A stretch of DNA of 64,000 nt from sequence record PP496436.1; one strand, given 5' to 3'. The notes below the pieces were generated by a model. The model searched no databases, was not told the DNA's origin, and saw nothing but the letters and a program-made list of their open reading frames with translations. Shown in pieces: positions 5,250 to 48,461 of this stretch (its first letter is position 1; each line of letters opens with the position of its first letter). Made by a program: the position numbers and the translations under genes.

Positions 5250-6683
5250 ATGAAAAACAATCCACAAGTCACGCGCCTTTCCGCCTTGGCTGCTGCTGGT
5301 ATCAACGTCAAGTCAGGTTCTCCGGTTGATGTCGTGCACCAGCACACTCGCACTCTGGGCAACAACATCGACAAGTTGAGCACGCCTCGTCAGTGGGCCA
5401 TTGCTCATCTGATGAACGAAGCGGCCGACCTGCTGGTTGTAGAAACTGGCAGCCTTCAAGACGACTACATCGACTACTTCAAAGGTGCACTGGAGAAGTT
5501 CGGTGTGTCCTCCCCGGCGGAACTGACCCAAGAGAAGGCTTCCGAGTTCTTCAACTGGATCAGTGACAACTGGAAGAAGGGCGAAGGCCCGAAAGCCGAA
5601 GCTAGCGTGGAAGTTGAGACTGCCAGCCAATTCTCCTTCGTCAAGGTAAGCCAGAACGGTAACACCTACCGGCTGGAGGCCTCGGACACCGGCAACTTCA
5701 AATCCGTCATGATCTGGAAGGGTGGCGTGTGGACGAAGCCAGGTCCGGACGAAGCGTTCAAGGAAAAGGAACCTCACCGCATGCTGGGCGCGCTGCGCAC
5801 CCCTAGCGGCTCGGAGCTGGCTACCCTCAACCTGCCGGAAACTCCGGTGGCAAGCATGGAAGAGATGGCCGAGCTGTTCGGCGCCATGGGTATCGAAGAG
5901 AGCGAGATCCGTCGCTTCTACGGTGGTGGCCCAGAGTGGAATGATCGCAGCGTCTACGACGGCAACATCCCGAGCGTATCCCCAGCTAATCTGGGCGTGA
6001 GCCCAACTTACGCCTACACCGACATGCACCCGCTGCGTGCCTATGAGGCGGAAGACACCATCCGTATCAATGGTCTGGATGCCACGTTGCAATCCATTGA
6101 CAACGGACAGGCCGTGTTCACAGTTGACGGCGTAGATACCACCACGGTGCCGCTGGACAACATCGTGGTCGCTGAAGGTGAAGCCTCGGTAGTAGCCACC
6201 GCCATGGTATCTCATCGCGTACTGGTCACTGCTGGTCACGAAGACCTGACTCAGTACAAGTCGCTGCGTCACGACTTCGAGACTGTTACCGCGAACCACC
6301 AAGAGCTGTCGCAAGTCAAGGTCGGCCCAGCACTGCAAACCCTCGCCAAGGCGGGTAACCGTCGCGCTCTGGTACTGGCCCACGCCGGTGTGCAGCGTAT
6401 CAACGAAGGTCATGCACTGCTCAAAGCCTCCATCGGCTACGGCAAGGAAGCGGCGACCGCCAGTGTCATCACAGAGCTGGCCGATCTGAACAACCTGTGT
6501 GGCAAGGATCAGGTGTCGGCACAAGACGTGATCGACTCCGCGCCGGTGGTCACTCATCTGAAGCAGGGCGAGTTCAAGGCCGACATGCCGGACGTGGTTG
6601 ACTCTTCGGACTTCGAGCTGAACGATCCGCAAGCCGAACAGGCGTCCACGCGCAAGAGCCGCTTCCCAAGCCGCAAGCGCTAA
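5250..6683 (+). CDS. Putative head/prohead core or scaffold protein
   Basis: ATG 5250 after GGAGAG; head-module position; recurrent x-T-A motifs. Confidence 0.5.
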   Translation: MKNNPQVTRLSALAAAGINVKSGSPVDVVHQHTRTLGNNIDKLSTPRQWAIAHLMNEAADLLVVETGSLQDDYIDYFKGALEKFGVSSPAELTQEKASEFFNWISDNWKKGEGPKAEASVEVETASQFSFVKVSQNGNTYRLEASDTGNFKSVMIWKGGVWTKPGPDEAFKEKEPHRMLGALRTPSGSELATLNLPETPVASMEEMAELFGAMGIEESEIRRFYGGGPEWNDRSVYDGNIPSVSPANLGVSPTYAYTDMHPLRAYEAEDTIRINGLDATLQSIDNGQAVFTVDGVDTTTVPLDNIVVAEGEASVVATAMVSHRVLVTAGHEDLTQYKSLRHDFETVTANHQELSQVKVGPALQTLAKAGNRRALVLAHAGVQRINEGHALLKASIGYGKEAATASVITELADLNNLCGKDQVSAQDVIDSAPVVTHLKQGEFKADMPDVVDSSDFELNDPQAEQASTRKSRFPSRKR

Positions 6684-6730
6684 TCATCTGGACAGGGGGA
6701 TCGCAAGGTCCCCTCATCAGGAACTTGACT

Positions 6731-8767
6731 ATGACTATCAAGAGTGCTACGTTTGCGGAAGCTGAATCGCAAGCTCAAGGCCTAGCCAACTCCATGGGAT
6801 GGCCGGGTGAGGTAATGGACAACGGTGACGGCACTGTCACTCTGTCGCCACCCGACGCATGGGATGAGGAAGAGAACCCCGGCAAGGTGGCAGCGTCCAA
6901 GCTGACCGGTAACAAGGACTGTCACGTCTTCGCCAGTATGGCGGTACCCAGTGAAGGCGAGTGGATGGCTGTCGTCATTCAAGGTACCCCAGCGCTGGTA
7001 CTCATCGACCAAGGATCTGGTGAAGGCTGGTTGACCCTTCAGGCCCCCGCGGACTTCGATGTTCCGGAGAGCGTGCTGATTCCTTTCCAACAACGCTTGA
7101 CCCAAACGGAAACTGCTTCAATGGACCTTGAACAAGACGTAGAACTGGCAGCAGGGAAGAAAAAATCGGAAGTGGACCAACTTATCGAACTGCGACAGGA
7201 ATACGATAAGCTTCAATTCTCAAAGTCGAAATTGAGCGTACACGGTAAGAACCCTACCAGCTCTCGTATCATCTCAGCGAAGAAAGGGTTGATAGAACGG
7301 GAGAAGGAATTCAAGGACAAGTTGAAGAAATTGGTCCCGTCGGGTCGTATTCCTACCATGGAGAGTTTGCAGAATCGTAAGATGCGGGAATCGGGAATTA
7401 AACCTCCGACCAAAGCTGAGAAGGATTCGGCCAGTGAGCGTCGGATGTTGAAGAGTGAAAAAGACAGGCAGACGAGAGTAGCTACTACAGTAAAGAAACA
7501 CGGAGTAACTGAATCGGAAGCCAATACCTTGCACCGGGGCAAATACCCTAAGTCCTATTATAAGGATGAACGGGACCTGGATGAGATCAGTCATAAGTTG
7601 AAAAATCCTAGGCTTACGGATGAGCAAGAAGCTAAGTTGGAGAAAGAGTTGAAAGACTTGCGCACGAAGTTCAAGGAAAAGAAGAAGAAATACGATGCCG
7701 TCCTCAAGGAAGGGCGGGAGGAATCTTCGGTTCAGCCGGATACCCGTACGCAGGTTCTGGCTAACGTCTCCAGCGACCCGGCCACTCCTGCGTATCAGGA
7801 AGCATCTATCACGGGAGTTACACCAGAAGGCCACATCTCAGTAGCATTCGCTGACGGCGATATCGGTGTGTACCAAGGTAAGTTCGACCCTGCTGGTCTG
7901 ATGCCAATCGCGGAAGCGGCAGGCGTTGAAGTTGCCAGCTTCAGACACCACACCATGGTTCTGGCCAACGTTGGCACTGCGGCAGCACCTGAATACGCCG
8001 AAGCAGAGGTGATTGGTTCCACCGAGGAAGGCCATCTGGAAGTCGCGTTCGCCGATGGTGACGTGGGCATCTACCGTTCCTTGTTCCACCCTACCGGTAT
8101 CTTGCCGCTGGGTGTGACTGCCGAGACGGCCAGTGTGCTCATCGAGGTGGCCGCACGTACGGCAATGACCCCGGAGCAGAAGCTCAAGCGTGCACAGGAC
8201 CTGCTCAAGCTGCGTACGCTGCACGACAAGTACGAGACCAACACCGACGCCCTGAAAGGCAAGAAAGGTCCGGAGAACAAAGCCAAGCGGGACAAGAACA
8301 ACGAGGACAAGGCCAAGCTCCGTGCCAAGCTGGACAAGATGGGTGTCACATCCCTGCCGAGCAAAGCTCACCTGCAGCGTACCATCAAGCAGCACAGCGA
8401 TCTGCCGACCCGTATGCGTGCATCGGACAAGAAGCCTGCTGCTAAGGTACCAACGAATAAGGCAGCACGGGACGCGGCCAAGAAGAAGTATGCGCCTGCT
8501 AAAGAGGACAAAGGATTAGACATGCGGATTAAGGCTCCGGGGTATGCTGAAAGGAATTTCGGCCCTGCTGCCATGAAACGAAAAGAGGAAAGAAAGTCTT
8601 TGCCCAAAGCTACTCAGGACAAGATCAAGAAGTTGGAAGCAAAGATAGAAGAGACGCTTACGGACATCCATAAGGGTTCCATCAGTAAAAAGGACGTTCA
8701 GACTGCCCGCGACCAAGTTAAGGCTTGGAAAGAGCAAGTCAAAGAACTTTCTACCCCGGCTAAGTAA
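6731..8767 (+). CDS. Modular Lys-rich putative internal head protein with two tandem 68-aa modules (VLAN...P.Y...G...V.FADGD)
   Basis: ATG 6731 after AGGA; duplicated segments start at 7754 and 7958 (204 nt apart); highly basic coiled segments. Confidence 0.6.
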   Translation: MTIKSATFAEAESQAQGLANSMGWPGEVMDNGDGTVTLSPPDAWDEEENPGKVAASKLTGNKDCHVFASMAVPSEGEWMAVVIQGTPALVLIDQGSGEGWLTLQAPADFDVPESVLIPFQQRLTQTETASMDLEQDVELAAGKKKSEVDQLIELRQEYDKLQFSKSKLSVHGKNPTSSRIISAKKGLIEREKEFKDKLKKLVPSGRIPTMESLQNRKMRESGIKPPTKAEKDSASERRMLKSEKDRQTRVATTVKKHGVTESEANTLHRGKYPKSYYKDERDLDEISHKLKNPRLTDEQEAKLEKELKDLRTKFKEKKKKYDAVLKEGREESSVQPDTRTQVLANVSSDPATPAYQEASITGVTPEGHISVAFADGDIGVYQGKFDPAGLMPIAEAAGVEVASFRHHTMVLANVGTAAAPEYAEAEVIGSTEEGHLEVAFADGDVGIYRSLFHPTGILPLGVTAETASVLIEVAARTAMTPEQKLKRAQDLLKLRTLHDKYETNTDALKGKKGPENKAKRDKNNEDKAKLRAKLDKMGVTSLPSKAHLQRTIKQHSDLPTRMRASDKKPAAKVPTNKAARDAAKKKYAPAKEDKGLDMRIKAPGYAERNFGPAAMKRKEERKSLPKATQDKIKKLEAKIEETLTDIHKGSISKKDVQTARDQVKAWKEQVKELSTPAK

Positions 8768-8789
8768 CCACACCTGACTGGAGCATGAC

Positions 8790-9548
8790 ATGAACGTGTT
8801 TGAAATGATTGCCCAGCAGAACGCCGCGATGAAACCCATCGACGTGCACAAGCTGGTTAAAGGCAAGGATGTAGATCCAAAGCTCAAGGAGATGACCACG
8901 GCCAAAGTCGGTATGCCCGGCTTGGCCCAGGCCATTACGTTCGCGGAGTGGTTGCCGTTCGCGGCCAAGACGTATCACTGCTCGCCGGATCCGAAGGATT
9001 ACATTCTGGTCCCGAACATCGTGATGCCATCGGAGATCCCCAACCGGAATGGCGTGGGCTTCCCCTTGCAGCAACTGGTACGCTTCAACCCCGAGACTGG
9101 TTGCCAAGGATTCCGTACGGCAGTCGGCAAGGGTACGTACGCTGATCACCAGAACAACACCGTTGCTCCACTGGCGAAAGGCGTGATCGTGGATTCGTTC
9201 ATGCGACCACTGGAAGGCTTCAAGGGTGGCGTGTGGAAGTTGCTGTTCCTCTTGGCGTACGACCGGTCCAAAGACCAAGCGCTCACCAACGCCATCTTGG
9301 CAGGCACTCGTACCAACTACAGCATGGGCGCGTACCTGACCAAGTACACGTGCTCGATCTGTGGCCGGGACCGGGGCCAGTGTGTGCACTTGAGCGCGCA
9401 GAAAGGTTCGGTGAACTTCCGCAAGGTAGGGAACCAGCTGGCGTACTCGCAGGCATACGAACCGATTTTCTTCGAGACGTCCTCGGTAGAAGATCCGGCA
9501 TTCGTATCGTCGATTACTGGCGCTGACCACCTGCTTATCACTCGGTAA
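8790..9548 (+). CDS. Putative prohead maturation protease
   Basis: 252 aa in head module; DHQN and YSMGA motifs followed by CSICG...C.H resemble phage prohead serine proteases; SD GGAG. Confidence 0.55.
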   Translation: MNVFEMIAQQNAAMKPIDVHKLVKGKDVDPKLKEMTTAKVGMPGLAQAITFAEWLPFAAKTYHCSPDPKDYILVPNIVMPSEIPNRNGVGFPLQQLVRFNPETGCQGFRTAVGKGTYADHQNNTVAPLAKGVIVDSFMRPLEGFKGGVWKLLFLLAYDRSKDQALTNAILAGTRTNYSMGAYLTKYTCSICGRDRGQCVHLSAQKGSVNFRKVGNQLAYSQAYEPIFFETSSVEDPAFVSSITGADHLLITR

Positions 9549-9580: not shown

Positions 9581-9739
9581 ATGGGTATCACTACCATTCT
9601 CCTGATCGTGTTGATAGTTCTGCTCGTCTGCGGCTTGCCCGTGTTCCCGTACTCCGCAGGTTGGGGCTACGGTCCATCTGGGCTGATCACGGTGATCGTC
9701 GTGATCCTGCTGATCCTCGTCTTGACCGGACGAATGTGA
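9581..9739 (+). CDS. DUF3309-like 52-aa two-helix membrane protein (absent from ORF track)
   Basis: MGITTILLIVLIVLLVCGLPVFPYSAGWGYGPSGLITVIVVILLILVLTGRM; SD GAGGT; the LP..PYS.GWGYGPSG signature matches DUF3309 as recalled. Confidence 0.8.
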   Translation: MGITTILLIVLIVLLVCGLPVFPYSAGWGYGPSGLITVIVVILLILVLTGRM

Positions 9740-9744
9740 CAACC

Positions 9745-9777
9745 GCCCGCTCTGGCAAACGCTGGGGCGGGCTTTTT
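9745..9777 (+). terminator. Intrinsic terminator
   Basis: GCCCGCTCTGGC-AAAC-GCTGGGGCGGGC stem (G-U pairs) followed by TTTTT. Confidence 0.8.
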
Positions 9778-9825
9778 CGTATCTGCTAATTACAAAACAT
9801 GGATAAATAAATTGGAAGATGGGAC

Positions 9826-11037
9826 ATGATCAAATTCGTGGAGATATCCGCACCTAGTTCGGACTTCGCCAAGACCCTCAAGAAAGGCATACGGGTCGTG
9901 GTCAACATGGGATCTACTAAGGAACCGTCCTATTGGATGGCGACTGTAGCAAAGAACAATGCAGCGAAGGGCACCGTCAACCTGAACTTCGATGATGGAG
10001 ACGTGGCCGAGTACAAAGCTATCAAGTCCAAGGTGGGTATTGTCGGGATCGGAGTTGCCAAAGTCCGCAAGACTGAAATCCCATTGTCTCAGGTTGGCAA
10101 GTGGCTTACTAGTGAGGAAACTACATCACAGTCCTCCTACCTTTCTGACCCTGTCCAGAAGTTTTTAGCTAAGTGGGTAGACTCCTTTGATAAGGACGGG
10201 GCCAATCCTTCAAATAAGAAATACTTGTTAAAGACAATGAAGGACTTATTACCTAACATACCCGAAGAGTATAGAAAACATACGGGTATCCTTTTCCGAG
10301 GGGTTAGGCTACCAGTAGAGGCTGTAACTTCTATTCTCGCGGGTTCTCGACTAAAATTTAAAGATGAATTCATTTCGTATTCCTCCGATAGAGATGCTGC
10401 TGTAAAATTTGCGGCCTATGTAGACTATGATAAAGGAAAAGAACAAATAGGGATAGTAATAAAAGAGGCTAGTAACTCTGTTGCGGTTAATATCTTTGAG
10501 GTATGGGATAACATCTCGTCAAAGTACAAAGATATACATTCTCAATCATTTGTAGACGAGGAAAAAGAAGTAGTACTTCAAAACTCCAACCTGGGACTAG
10601 CTACTTCACAGATTGATATGCTACTTATATCTAAAGGTAAAATAAAATCATTAGGGAAGCAGGAGCCTCCCGGCTGGAATAAGTTTCTTAAATCAAGTGG
10701 AATACTTAAAGACATATATTGCATTCCCAACACTAAAGATAATATTAAGGGTGTACAAGAAGTCCTTAGTTTGAACACGACAACTCTTATGAATCCGCAG
10801 AAGGTGTCGGCTGTACTAACCAAACTAGGATTTCCTAAATCTAACGGGGAAACATTTAGGACGTTGTACCTTCCTGACCTAGAGCTTTCTATAAAAGCGT
10901 CTATGGTTCCTCAAGGAATACTGTTCGAGACTGGTAAGGGCTGGCGATTTGCCAAGTTTGAGTATAAACAGGTAGGGATAGCAGAGGATGAAGCATCCGC
11001 TATCAATTTATTTAATAGGATAGCCAAACAAAGATAA
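9826..11037 (+). CDS. Tudor/SH3-like module fused to an R-S-E class ADP-ribosyltransferase-like domain
   Basis: aa13-94 closely similar to the module at 11700-11945; downstream LFRG...ISYSSD...EEKEVVL catalytic motif order; AT-rich from about 10108. Confidence 0.7.
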   Translation: MIKFVEISAPSSDFAKTLKKGIRVVVNMGSTKEPSYWMATVAKNNAAKGTVNLNFDDGDVAEYKAIKSKVGIVGIGVAKVRKTEIPLSQVGKWLTSEETTSQSSYLSDPVQKFLAKWVDSFDKDGANPSNKKYLLKTMKDLLPNIPEEYRKHTGILFRGVRLPVEAVTSILAGSRLKFKDEFISYSSDRDAAVKFAAYVDYDKGKEQIGIVIKEASNSVAVNIFEVWDNISSKYKDIHSQSFVDEEKEVVLQNSNLGLATSQIDMLLISKGKIKSLGKQEPPGWNKFLKSSGILKDIYCIPNTKDNIKGVQEVLSLNTTTLMNPQKVSAVLTKLGFPKSNGETFRTLYLPDLELSIKASMVPQGILFETGKGWRFAKFEYKQVGIAEDEASAINLFNRIAKQR

Positions 11038-11040
11038 TAG

Positions 11041-11070
11041 TTGCACGGGCTGTTTTGGGTGTGCTATAAT
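11041..11070 (+). promoter_or_regulatory. sigma70-type early promoter
   Basis: TTGCAC-18bp-TATAAT with extended -10 TG. Confidence 0.8.
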
Positions 11071-11123
11071 AGCACCATGGCACTATTCAAGCGCCGCCCA
11101 CTATCCCAATGAGGAAAGCAACC

Positions 11124-12833
11124 ATGACCAGATTGACCCTAGCAACCGTTAACGCCGAGATCGCAAAGTCCGGGGGCAAAGAAACTCTGGTCAAGGGTAA
11201 GGGCTACTTCTACTGGATTGGTGGCCGTGCCGACGCTGATCCTCAAATCTGGACTTCCATTTACGTTGCTGCGCTAAACCAGATGACGCTGGCCCAGTGG
11301 CTGGAAGACTGGAAGCGCAATGACGACCAATACAACAAACCTACTCCCGACAAGGAAACCCGCAAAATGGCTATCAGACACGTTCAGACCCTCGCAGCTC
11401 CTGCTCGTCCAAAACCGCCTACCGGTGCAAAAGCAGGTGGCGGCAAGTCAATCGAAGAGAGAATCGAATGGAATGAAGGTAGGATCAAGGAGGCTACTGC
11501 GGAACTGAAAGCCACCAAAGATCCGAAAGCTATTGACAAGATCAAAAAGCAGATTGATATCTACAAGGGTAACATCGCCGGTTTCAAGAAAAGGCTGAAC
11601 CCGGAAAAGAAACCAGCACCGGCCAAAGGTCCTAGCGGTGCTGCTGCCAAGAAGCGTACCACTGCTACTGCTGCACAGGAGACTGCGTCCCCGGCTACCG
11701 ACTTCGCCAAGTCGTTGAAGAAGGGCGTTCGTGTACTGGTCAATCTCGGCAACACCAAAGAGCCGTCCTACTTCCTCGGCGCCATCACCAAGAACAACGC
11801 CAGCAAGGGTTCGGTCAACGTGCTGTTCGATGACGGCGACGTTGCAGAGGTCCGTGCGATCAAATCCAAGGTCGGCATCGTGGGTATCGCCATCGACAAG
11901 GTACGCAAGTCGGAAGTGCCAGCTGATCAGATCAGCAAGTGGCTGGCTGGTGCGGCACCAGCGACCAAGACCCCCGCCAAGCCTAACGAGCTGAAGAAGT
12001 CGCTGGATATCCTCGGTCCGAAGAAGGACTCCAAGGTGCCCTCCAAGCCCGTGAGTAAGGACACCGAAGTACAAGATATGTATGGTCAGCTGGTGGACAA
12101 GATGACAGCTATCTTGAAAGCCAAGAAGAAGTACAGCCCAGCGTTGGATAAGGCAATTGATGACTACGCCAAGCTGCCTACGTCAACCAGCAAGGCCAAG
12201 AAGATCGAAGCTTTGCAGGCAGCTATCGGACTCGCTGATTCTCAGCTGGGTAAGTCCAAACCGTTCAGCCCAGCGGAAGCCCGGAAGGTCATCGGTGCTA
12301 TCCCCGGCTGGAAGTCATCCAACGTGAAGAACAAAGCGTCAGCCACGTTCACCAAAGATTACCCGAACGGTGTCACCGCTACTGCTTACGTCTTCCCACA
12401 ATATGTGTCGTTCCAATACCCGCAAGGTGAGAATGATCACATCAGCGACTTGTCCAAGATCGCAGCTTACATAAAGCAGATCGACGATGATCAAGCAGTA
12501 ACACCCGACCAAGGTAAAGCACTGGATGATCTGGCCAAGGCATTGAAGGGCTGGCCGAACAAGGTCCTCCCACGGGATGCCGACGAAGACAACTTCCTGC
12601 TGCGCGGGTTTGAAGATGATGATCTCCCGGCTGATGTGGAGCCAACTGCTGACGCCATCGAAGCGCACGCAATCTCGATCTTCAAGAAGATGAAAAGTGT
12701 TGACAACTTCAAGAAGAGCAAGATGTACCACGGCGACAACACATACTCCTTCTCGGCTGGCGGCACCGTGGGCTACGTGTACTTCGATGAAGATGGCGTC
12801 GGCATGGTCCGGGCAACACCGTTCGAAGAGTAA
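11124..12833 (+). CDS. Modular Lys-rich protein containing the Tudor/SH3-like module; possible internal start at 11367
   Basis: SD GAGGA before ATG 11124; module DFAKSLKKGVRVLVNLG...FDDGD...KWL at 11700-11945. Confidence 0.7.
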   Translation: MTRLTLATVNAEIAKSGGKETLVKGKGYFYWIGGRADADPQIWTSIYVAALNQMTLAQWLEDWKRNDDQYNKPTPDKETRKMAIRHVQTLAAPARPKPPTGAKAGGGKSIEERIEWNEGRIKEATAELKATKDPKAIDKIKKQIDIYKGNIAGFKKRLNPEKKPAPAKGPSGAAAKKRTTATAAQETASPATDFAKSLKKGVRVLVNLGNTKEPSYFLGAITKNNASKGSVNVLFDDGDVAEVRAIKSKVGIVGIAIDKVRKSEVPADQISKWLAGAAPATKTPAKPNELKKSLDILGPKKDSKVPSKPVSKDTEVQDMYGQLVDKMTAILKAKKKYSPALDKAIDDYAKLPTSTSKAKKIEALQAAIGLADSQLGKSKPFSPAEARKVIGAIPGWKSSNVKNKASATFTKDYPNGVTATAYVFPQYVSFQYPQGENDHISDLSKIAAYIKQIDDDQAVTPDQGKALDDLAKALKGWPNKVLPRDADEDNFLLRGFEDDDLPADVEPTADAIEAHAISIFKKMKSVDNFKKSKMYHGDNTYSFSAGGTVGYVYFDEDGVGMVRATPFEE

Positions 12834-15090: not shown

Positions 15091-16269
15091 ATGACGAAGA
15101 AGATTGGTACAGCACTGGCCGCACTGGTGTGCATGTTGACACTACAAGGTCAGGCCCATGCCGACTACGACACCAAGGCTTGCAACGTGTCGTTCACGGA
15201 AGAGCAGGAACGAATACTGGGGAGTGCCCATCAGGTAGGTTCCCCGGTTAACTTCGGAGTGACTCTCCAAGCCATCGCGTGGAAAGAGTCCTTTGTCGGG
15301 GACAAGGTAGTTCGCGCTAACCCAACCGACGGGCGTTACGGTTCTTACGGCATCACCCACGTGCAGCTCTCGACGGGCGCATGGATGCTGGACCAGAAGC
15401 CTACCAAACCATTCCGAACAGGTCTCCGCAACGATCTAGTAACAGACGACAGCTATGCGCTACAGTTCGCCGCTGCCTACCTGGTGCACACGGAAACCAT
15501 CGCCAAGAAGATCACCCGTGACGGTAACCGCCAATGGCGAGCCACGGTGGCGTCTTACAACGGATCAGGTGCCCAAGCGCGCCGCTACGTGGAAGACGTT
15601 GCCGACAAAGTATCCTACCTTAAATCATGTGGGTTGACCAAGACCATGAAACGAATCAGTACGCCGCTGGTTGCTGCAGACAGCACCGCCAAGAAGTCCG
15701 CCAAGGAAAAGCTGAAGGATAGGCTGGCGGAAAAGCGTGTGGCTACGGCAGTGGCCGAGACCAAATCCAAGCGCCCCAACACCAAGTCTCGCAAAGTGGC
15801 GGATGAACCCGTCAAGGTGAAGCGTGCCCGTGACGTACTGGCCGCCGCCGGTGCACTCCCGCGCAAGTCTCCGAAGTCAGTCCTTCGCAATGCGGATCCG
15901 CTGACCAAAGAGTACATCCAGAAGAAGACGATGGACATCTACGAGCGTGCACTCAAGCGGGCCAAAGGTGATCCTACCGTAATCGCATGGGCCAAGGGGT
16001 TGGCGGTCAAGCACATCAAAGACCCACTGGATCAACAGTTCATGTTCTCAGTGCACACACTGGCAGCATGCTGTGTTGCCGGTGGGCAGACGAAGTTTCA
16101 AGCCGATCTGGACTTCCTCAACTTGATGCTGGCAACCTATCTGAACCCGAGCGTGGCACTGGTGTTCAAGAACGGCAAGTTCGACGCCGCACTGGTCAGT
16201 AAGGAAGAAGCCGCCGAGCGTATGCACAACGAAGACGGAATCAGCGTCATCTACAGCGTTATCGTATAA
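15091..16269 (+). CDS. Exported SLT-family lytic transglycosylase with basic linker and extra C-terminal domain
   Basis: Signal peptide ending AHA; AIAWKES (catalytic Glu), SYGITHVQ and ASYNG motifs. Confidence 0.75.
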   Translation: MTKKIGTALAALVCMLTLQGQAHADYDTKACNVSFTEEQERILGSAHQVGSPVNFGVTLQAIAWKESFVGDKVVRANPTDGRYGSYGITHVQLSTGAWMLDQKPTKPFRTGLRNDLVTDDSYALQFAAAYLVHTETIAKKITRDGNRQWRATVASYNGSGAQARRYVEDVADKVSYLKSCGLTKTMKRISTPLVAADSTAKKSAKEKLKDRLAEKRVATAVAETKSKRPNTKSRKVADEPVKVKRARDVLAAAGALPRKSPKSVLRNADPLTKEYIQKKTMDIYERALKRAKGDPTVIAWAKGLAVKHIKDPLDQQFMFSVHTLAACCVAGGQTKFQADLDFLNLMLATYLNPSVALVFKNGKFDAALVSKEEAAERMHNEDGISVIYSVIV

Positions 16270-48333: not shown

Positions 48334-48381
48334 AACCCCGTGTAAAACTATCTGTCAAATGGTAGTTGCACGGGGTTTTTT
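48334..48381 (+). terminator. Intrinsic terminator overlapping the -35 box of the next promoter
   Basis: AACCCCGTG...CACGGGGTT followed by TTTT. Confidence 0.75.
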
Positions 48382-48394
48382 CGTGTGCTATAAT
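48366..48394 (+). promoter_or_regulatory. sigma70-type early promoter
   Basis: TTGCAC-17bp-TATAAT with extended -10 TG; closely matches the 11041 promoter. Confidence 0.85.
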
Positions 48395-48461
48395 GGCACC
48401 ATGGCACCAGCCATACCCGGAAACATTGAACTTCCGGCCACTGTCCCAAGAGGAACGCACC

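Follow-up and report, generated by a model that had tools for sequence, protein, structure and literature searches.

What is an AT-rich gene segment with the motifs of an ADP-ribosyltransferase (ART) doing among the head genes of a lytic jumbo phage? The question is raised by gp9 of Pseudomonas phage vB_PpuM-Illi-2 (hereafter Illi-2), a lytic jumbo myovirus of Pseudomonas putida that is part of the CEPEST collection and belongs to genus cluster G3; the paper on the G3 phages covers their genomes, morphology and host range (bioRxiv 10.1101/2024.03.26.586772). The window, i.e., the whole stretch of DNA that was analyzed, comprises bases 1-64000 of the Illi-2 sequence (PP496436.1; genome 201 kb). 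An initial annotation, made from the sequence by eye, had read the C-terminal 309 amino acids (aa) of gp9, encoded by the last 309 codons and hereafter called the payload, as a recently acquired ART that had been swapped onto a shared module and was delivered through it as a host-takeover or anti-defence effector. We find that gp9 is an intact three-part chimera, and we think it rather probable that it is a mono-ART of the R-S-E class that acts on host proteins and is possibly built into the prohead core and injected. The parts of the gene are listed here; P0002, P0003 and P0004 are three distant homologues described below, and GC3 stands for the G+C content at third codon positions.

9826-11037, plus strand: gp9 (Illi2_00009), an intact reading frame of 403 aa annotated as 'hypothetical protein'; chimeric, with a Tudor-like module followed by an ART domain and then by a C-terminal domain
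9841-10107, plus strand: Tudor/SH3-like beta-barrel module (aa 6-94, ending in KWL); GC3 0.65; paralogue of a segment of gp10 and, weakly, of gp6
10129-10656, plus strand: ART-like domain (aa 102-277), the region common to P0002, P0003, P0004 and gp124 of phage phiM12; GC3 0.36
10294-10302, plus strand: F157-R158-G159; Arg and Gly invariant in relatives, on a predicted beta-strand
10375-10383, plus strand: S184-Y-S186 (S-x-S/T motif); S184 invariant, at the end of a strand that is followed by a helix
10561-10569, plus strand: E246-K-E248 ([E/Q]-x-E motif); E248 invariant, at the start of a predicted strand
10681-11034, plus strand: C-terminal domain (aa 286-403), 118 aa; GC3 0.36, low-confidence model

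The two ends of gp9 differ sharply in composition. GC3 is 0.649 in codons 1-94 and 0.361 in codons 95-403 (total GC, 0.507 and 0.391, respectively), and the abrupt switch to A/T-ending codons that had been noticed after the KWL motif is thus borne out by a scan of GC and codon usage. Measured against the 80 other annotated genes of the window (GC3 0.673 ± 0.055, minimum 0.541), the payload has a z-score of -5.7, and none of 412 in-frame windows of 309 codons drawn from other genes has a GC3 below 0.547. The payload region is also the sole 300-bp stretch of the 64 kb that falls below 45% GC, and the lowest 930-bp window begins at position 10111. Both halves of the payload are equally AT-rich (GC3 0.361 for the ART part and 0.364 for the C-terminal domain). 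Two moderately low-GC stretches are found in gp6, at 7100-7850 and 8450-8900 (0.43-0.49); they are far milder than that of gp9.

The junction between the two compositions had been placed exactly at the end of the module. Homology agrees with this placement: of nine DNA comparisons between gp9 and its gp10 paralogue, seven show similarity up to 10106 and the other two up to 10117, and similarity to the ART homologues starts at about aa 102. Composition is less precise, the maximum-likelihood change-point of GC3 being codon 140 (nt 10246) with a support interval of two log-likelihood units (2-lnL) that spans codons 82-161 (nt 10072-10309) and takes in codon 94 (delta lnL 1.83); GC3 has an intermediate value, 0.52, over codons 95-140. 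The position of the seam is set by homology, and composition alone locates it only within about 120 nt on either side.

A full HMMER search of 1.84 billion representative proteins returned, besides the cluster of gp9 orthologues, just three distant homologues, P0002 (341 aa, E 3.7e-19), P0003 (246 aa, E 6.4e-7) and P0004 (226 aa, E 5.3e-4), each of which aligns to aa 102-277 of gp9 with about 27-28% identity. A tblastn search with P0002 led in turn to a protein of 167 aa that is encoded by the Sinorhizobium phages phiM12, phiM7, phiM19 and phiN3 (E 0.01-0.03). Every detectable relative of the gp9 ART is at most 30% identical to it. When the phiM12 protein, gp124, is added (23-27% identity), the resulting five-lineage alignment has only eight invariant columns, and R158, G159, S184 and E248 are among them; the residue two positions before E248 is Glu in four lineages and Gln in one. 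The motif positions given in the initial annotation are all correct (KWL, aa 92-94, ending at nt 10107; FRG, aa 157-159, with the Arg codon at 10297; SYS from 10375; EKE from 10561). In the four G3 phages that carry gp9 (see below), 13 residues of the protein vary, none of them at the motifs, and the ratio of non-synonymous to synonymous substitution rates (dN/dS) in the ART part is about 0.2, indicating purifying selection. Other searches added no members to the family: a word-seeded protein search returned gp9 orthologues only, family-pattern scans found no further ART relatives in IMG/VR, in JGI metagenome contigs or in GTDB genome contigs, and tblastn of the ART part against phages, with E values of up to 10, gave chance matches in Streptococcus phages only. 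As to the Sinorhizobium phage proteins, phiM12 gp124 (167 aa, hypothetical; NC_027204, 5935-6438) and its homologues in phiN3, phiM7 and phiM19 look like unannotated stand-alone R-S-E ARTs; gp124 adjoins a tape-measure-like gene.

The payload was modelled with AlphaFold (AF2) from a four-row alignment. In the numbering of the modelled piece, R158 lies on strand 61-69, S184-S186 at the end of strand 88-92, followed by helix 95-103, and E246-E248 at the start of strand 154-158. Searched against the PDB with Foldseek, the model retrieved ARTs for nearly all of its top matches, with template modelling (TM) scores of 0.25-0.41; pertussis toxin S1 was the best (E 1.9e-3, probability 1.00), and the others included the Rhs toxins TreX/TreTu, KptA/Tpt1, cholera A1, PltA, Vis, Scabin, pierisin and CARDS. 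Against BFVD, the best match was the protein of Sinorhizobium phage phiN3 (E 3.7e-7, TM 0.61, 21% identity), and the phiN3/phiM12 family was therefore reached in two ways, by structure in BFVD and by sequence from P0002 (E 0.01). The next BFVD matches were models annotated as ModA, ModB, RNA polymerase-ADP-ribosyltransferase or ADP-ribosylase; fusion proteins of the head-morphogenesis or minor-capsid type, with ART-like parts, were also present. For a direct comparison with the ARTs of phage T4, the T4 proteins were taken from NC_000866 (accession given in PMC10468400). Aligned by hhalign, the gp9-family profile matches T4 ModA with 74% probability (E 2.8e-5) over 101 columns with the three motifs in register, the usual bar being 90-95%; ModB follows at 30%, with the Arg and Ser motifs in register.

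Conserved motifs in distant relatives, a predicted fold that retrieves ARTs and a profile in register with ModA all support the proposed R-S-E assignment. Very probably, then, the AT-rich part contains an R-S-E ART that belongs to a small family not filed before, with ModA as its nearest known relative. Since no curated family reaches threshold, the family is taken to be new as well as small. If the enzyme is active, NAD+ would be bound by R158 together with S184-x-S186, with E246-x-E248 as the catalytic motif for the transfer. In the ART superfamily, the E-x-E form goes with arginine acceptors, and the form found in gp9 predicts an arginine acceptor here too. By analogy with ModA, ModB and Alt of T4, gp9 would most likely ADP-ribosylate host proteins, redirecting or disarming the cell, and it may thus have a host-takeover or anti-defence role.

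The description of the payload as an ART holds for aa 102-277; it does not extend to the additional 118-aa domain at the C-terminus (aa 286-403). Within this domain, aa 330-386 (nt 10813-10983) resemble aa 378-434 of gp10 of phage Pori-4, another G3 phage, which are part of an insert there (60 aligned columns with 38% identity; E 1e-4, the database being small). The Pori-4 copy of this 57-aa piece is not AT-rich and lies in the insert that separates Pori-4 gp10 from Amme-1 gp10, and the piece appears to be a second shuffled piece. No other homologues of aa 286-403 were found.

The gene as a whole is optional among the G3 phages, as a comparison of its flanks makes clear:

9787-11035, plus strand: indel cassette of 1249 bp, made up of an AT-rich 39-nt leader and the whole of gp9
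9745-9780, plus strand: intrinsic terminator of gp8, a 12-bp stem with nine G-C pairs and a T-run; just 5' of the cassette and kept in phages without gp9
11038-11110, plus strand: promoter-like element and conserved leader before gp10 (GTTGCAC, 15 nt, TGCTATAAT); the end of the cassette is one base short of it

The cassette is present in four of nine sister phages (Illi-2, SKa-4, Amme-1 and Pori-4; gp9 identity 98-99%) and absent from the other five (Aura, Lauda, Voja-6, KoPa-5 and Peetri), which have about 24 bp in its place. Aura, without gp9, falls in the same species cluster as Illi-2 and SKa-4. The presence of gp9 does not follow phylogeny, which implies exchange or repeated loss, and this distribution fits the earlier description of a variable, foreign-looking addition. 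It does not fit the idea that the payload alone is the exchanged unit, because the indel at 9787-11035 takes in the leader and the entire gene, module included. The term 'recently acquired' is reasonable for the 3' two-thirds of gp9. As a cassette, gp9 is optional and is bounded by the terminator of gp8 on one side and the promoter-like element of gp10 on the other. A second copy of the promoter-like element of gp10 (about 70-90 nt) is found at 48363-48450, before gp59; the two share a leader (GCACCATGGCAC ... CCACT.TCCCA) and look like a phage promoter class. On the other side of the cassette, gp8 (9581-9780 in the window, with the terminator) codes for a 52-aa DUF3309 protein (Pfam E 5.7e-18) that is conserved in all nine phages.

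Where the cassette resides bears on how its product might reach the host. The order of genes is terminase large subunit (TerL), portal, gp5, gp6, head maturation protease, gp8, gp9 and gp10, and the neighbourhood is defined as one of head morphogenesis by the protease:

8790-9548, plus strand: head maturation protease (phrog_18299, E 5.9e-62)

Two of the distant homologues occupy similar places. P0002 is encoded directly after a protease that is 37.5% identical to that of Illi-2, and its contig also encodes a TerL (35% identity to that of Illi-2) and a portal (32%); P0003 is encoded between TerL and the portal. This occurrence of three lineages in a head-morphogenesis cluster is the best argument for the gp9 ART as a virion or prohead protein, and it is independent of the module, whose only link to the capsid is its restriction to head-cluster proteins of the genus. 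Judging from gene position, delivery of gp9 by the virion is plausible; delivery via the shared module, by which gp9 may join the prohead core and then enter the cell with the DNA, is plausible as well. The G+C contents of the three head-cluster lineages are 57%, 42% and 30%, a span that makes an AT-rich member of the phage pool a credible donor. The donor itself was probably a different large phage from within this broad lineage, in which ART homologues are likewise found among terminase, portal and protease genes. An alignment made with MAFFT had suggested that P0002 shares the module-plus-ART architecture of gp9; this was ruled out, as a hidden Markov model (HMM) of the module and BLAST found no module in it and hhalign gave 0.07%.

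Other genes of the cluster are also variable. In the nine G3 phages, gp5, gp6 and gp10 (window 5250-8767 and 11124-12833) are length-polymorphic mosaics of 475-730, 464-734 and 550-702 aa, respectively, with conserved ends and swapped or inserted middles. The possibility that such variable inserts are generally AT-rich was rejected, the gp10 inserts of Pori-4 and Peetri having a GC content of 0.47-0.63. A search of PDB sequences with the head maturation protease gave no match. Further downstream, gp15 (15091-16269) has a weak match to an SLT lytic transglycosylase (E 0.0019, below the cut-off) and a match to phrog_600, and may be a virion-associated murein hydrolase.

The N-terminal part of gp9, residues 6-94, is predicted to form a Tudor/SH3-like beta-barrel that would also be used within gp10 and gp6, conserved proteins of the portal-protease cluster:

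11124-12833, plus strand: gp10, 569 aa, present in all nine phages; internal module at nt 11688-11945 (aa 189-274)
6731-8767, plus strand: gp6, 678 aa; weak internal copy of the module at nt 7958-8116

In the AF2 model, the module is a five-stranded barrel (core predicted local distance difference test score, pLDDT, about 70), its Foldseek matches are mostly Tudor domains (E 0.1-0.5), and Tudor HMMs are matched below threshold by three of five module copies (best E 9.7e-4). A word-seeded protein search with the module returned gp10 of the same genus only. Outside the genus, the module was found only in the Vibrio phages GR11A and GR7B, whose copies also end in KWL. In GR11A it occurs in three proteins (00019, 00024 and 00025), one of which, GR11A_00024 (vB_VcorM_GR11A, MT366761.1, 14111-15949, minus strand), has an N-terminal, KWL-ended module and, behind it, a SprT-like metallopeptidase domain that passes the Pfam cut-off (E 8.5e-7). 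Between gp9 and gp10 the modules are 55-66% identical in protein sequence; in DNA, identity between the module of gp9 and each of the resident gp10 modules is no higher than 68-70%, a divergence at odds with the proposal that the payload was swapped onto a recent local copy. With its native composition and this level of identity, the module cannot have been duplicated locally in recent times, nor does it belong to the AT-rich import. Either the gp9 chimera must have been assembled elsewhere, in a phage with a similar G+C content, or the gene must be an older resident that had its 3' part exchanged. The ART and C-terminal domains would have been imported jointly from a gene pool of much lower G+C and fused in frame to a module of native composition.

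Several observations weigh against reading gp9 as an ART that is packaged and injected. On the side of the enzyme, gp9 and its parts have no significant match in Pfam, NCBIfam, PHROG, PADLOC or PDB sequences, and a PDB profile search gave nothing below E 0.15; the model of the payload, built from an alignment of four sequences, has only moderate confidence, with a mean pLDDT of 56 and values of about 60-76 for the ART core, and no PDB Foldseek match is at E 1e-3 or better; moreover, the family is so tiny that the conservation statistics rest on five lineages. On the side of delivery, no module was detected in P0002 and P0003 with the module HMM, and the module is therefore not needed for a location in the head cluster; and in gp10 and gp6 it is an internal segment, not an N-terminal tag, which makes a targeting role less than obvious. 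Alt, the T4 ART known to be packaged and one of the models originally invoked, reaches only 1.9% in hhalign, with the aligned piece outside the motifs. Finally, a strong terminator stands 5' of gp9, and a sigma-70-type promoter was sought in the gp9 leader and none was recognisable.

The alternative that survives best is that gp9 is an active ART made and acting inside the infected cell like ModA and ModB, and not part of the virion, its place in the head cluster being a permissive insertion site. This is a possibility to be taken seriously, if an unlikely one. It would account for a profile that resembles ModA and ModB and not Alt, and for the stand-alone, 167-aa form of the closest structural match, the phiN3/phiM12 gp124 family; the exact placement of the cassette, directly after the terminator of gp8 and directly before the promoter element of gp10, would likewise suit a neutral landing site. 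It leaves unexplained why the three independent lineages of gp9, P0002 and P0003 all lie among terminase, portal and protease genes, and why gp9 shares a domain that is otherwise confined, in this genus, to head-cluster proteins. We favour the reading of gp9 as an ART that may be prohead-associated and injected. It is very improbable that the ART-like domain is catalytically dead, with gp9 being another structural or core protein of the head and the conserved residues serving in folding or binding: five sister phages do manage without the gene, and in five of the six carrier pairs the differences in the C-terminal domain are all non-synonymous (2-5, as against 0 synonymous), but the full R / S-x-S / [E/Q]-x-E set is kept below 30% identity, which is the pattern of active ARTs, and the ART part is under purifying selection. 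That the payload is no ART at all, its motifs and weak fold matches having arisen by chance in AT-rich orphan sequence, is hardly credible, because, against the negative curated-family and PDB sequence searches and the modest confidence of the model, the motifs are invariant in homologues found independently of them and stand in canonical order and secondary-structure positions, two structure libraries give ARTs almost exclusively, hhalign aligns all three motifs with those of ModA, and even the sub-threshold Pfam hints in the homologues (Exotox-A_cataly, E 0.044; DRAT, E 0.092) point to ARTs.

Phage ARTs are classic host-takeover enzymes, known in detail almost solely from T4, and gp9 appears to define an ART family, small and so far without annotation, whose members are encoded in head-morphogenesis clusters of several large phages that are only distantly related to each other. 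The nine naturally occurring sister phages, of which four carry gp9 and five lack it, offer a ready comparison for the contribution of the enzyme to infection. In addition, the compositional seam inside a single reading frame is a clear case of in-frame domain exchange in the structural-gene clusters of phages, and if the Tudor-like barrel is indeed an incorporation domain, it would add a new route for loading cargo into capsids.

Among known systems, ModA and ModB of T4 are the closest in the enzyme itself. They share with gp9 the size of the catalytic domain and the order of the motifs, and models annotated as such are among its BFVD matches; the identity, however, is 16-25% over the aligned part, and gp9 matches no curated family model. 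gp9 is also twice as long, with the Tudor-like module at its N-terminus and the extra C-terminal domain, and it is encoded in a head cluster, whereas modA and modB lie between the srd and modA.2-mrh genes, away from head-morphogenesis genes. The phiN3/phiM12 gp124 family, the best structural match, aligns with gp9 at R, S and E-x-E; in contrast to gp9, its members are stand-alone and uncharacterised, lack the module and the C-terminal domain, and are encoded beside tail and baseplate genes.

T4 Alt is a capsid constituent that reaches the host together with the DNA (note in the T4 record, NC_000866). What gp9 may have in common with Alt is the concept of a large, injected ART protein, its packaging being suggested by gene position; Alt-type models do occur among the BFVD matches, but the catalytic region of Alt is without profile similarity to gp9. 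T4 uses a short, cleaved capsid-targeting peptide, and gp9 has a folded beta-barrel of 90 aa instead. In the T4 record (NC_000866, 1066-1451), alt.-1 and alt.-2 are noted as the result of an ancient duplication that involved the beginning of alt; duplicated N-terminal parts thus have a precedent in the gene for a packaged ART.

The internal proteins of the T-even phages combine a conserved capsid-targeting sequence with diverse cargo (PMC3012670). gp9 likewise couples a conserved part associated with the head to variable functional parts that are exchanged horizontally, and in both cases gene content is polymorphic among close relatives; the difference is that the domain shared by gp9 is internal in two of the three resident proteins. 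In the MuF polymorphic toxins, an N-terminal head-morphogenesis domain, encoded near the portal and terminase, is followed by variable C-terminal toxins, 14% of which are putative ARTs; their delivery is hypothesised to be coupled to that of the DNA, and they are found only in temperate phages (PMC5576092). The gp9 gene similarly lies in a portal-protease cluster, and the cargo behind its module varies, being an ART here and a SprT-like peptidase in GR11A. gp9 differs from the MuF proteins in lacking the MuF/SPP1 gp7 domain (in Pfam, only a weak, N-terminal Tudor-like match is seen) and in having no small, immunity-like reading frame after it, and Illi-2 is a lytic jumbo myovirus, not a temperate phage. 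We suggest, very tentatively and as a doubtful generalization, that the KWL-ended, Tudor-like barrel may be a portable prohead-core incorporation domain of large lytic phages, with exchangeable enzymes behind it (an ART in G3, a SprT-like peptidase in GR11A) and with gp9 as a freshly recombined ART member. If true, it would constitute a barrel-based, polymorphic system of ejection proteins, analogous to the MuF toxins and to the T-even phages' capsid-targeting sequence, and built on a folded domain.

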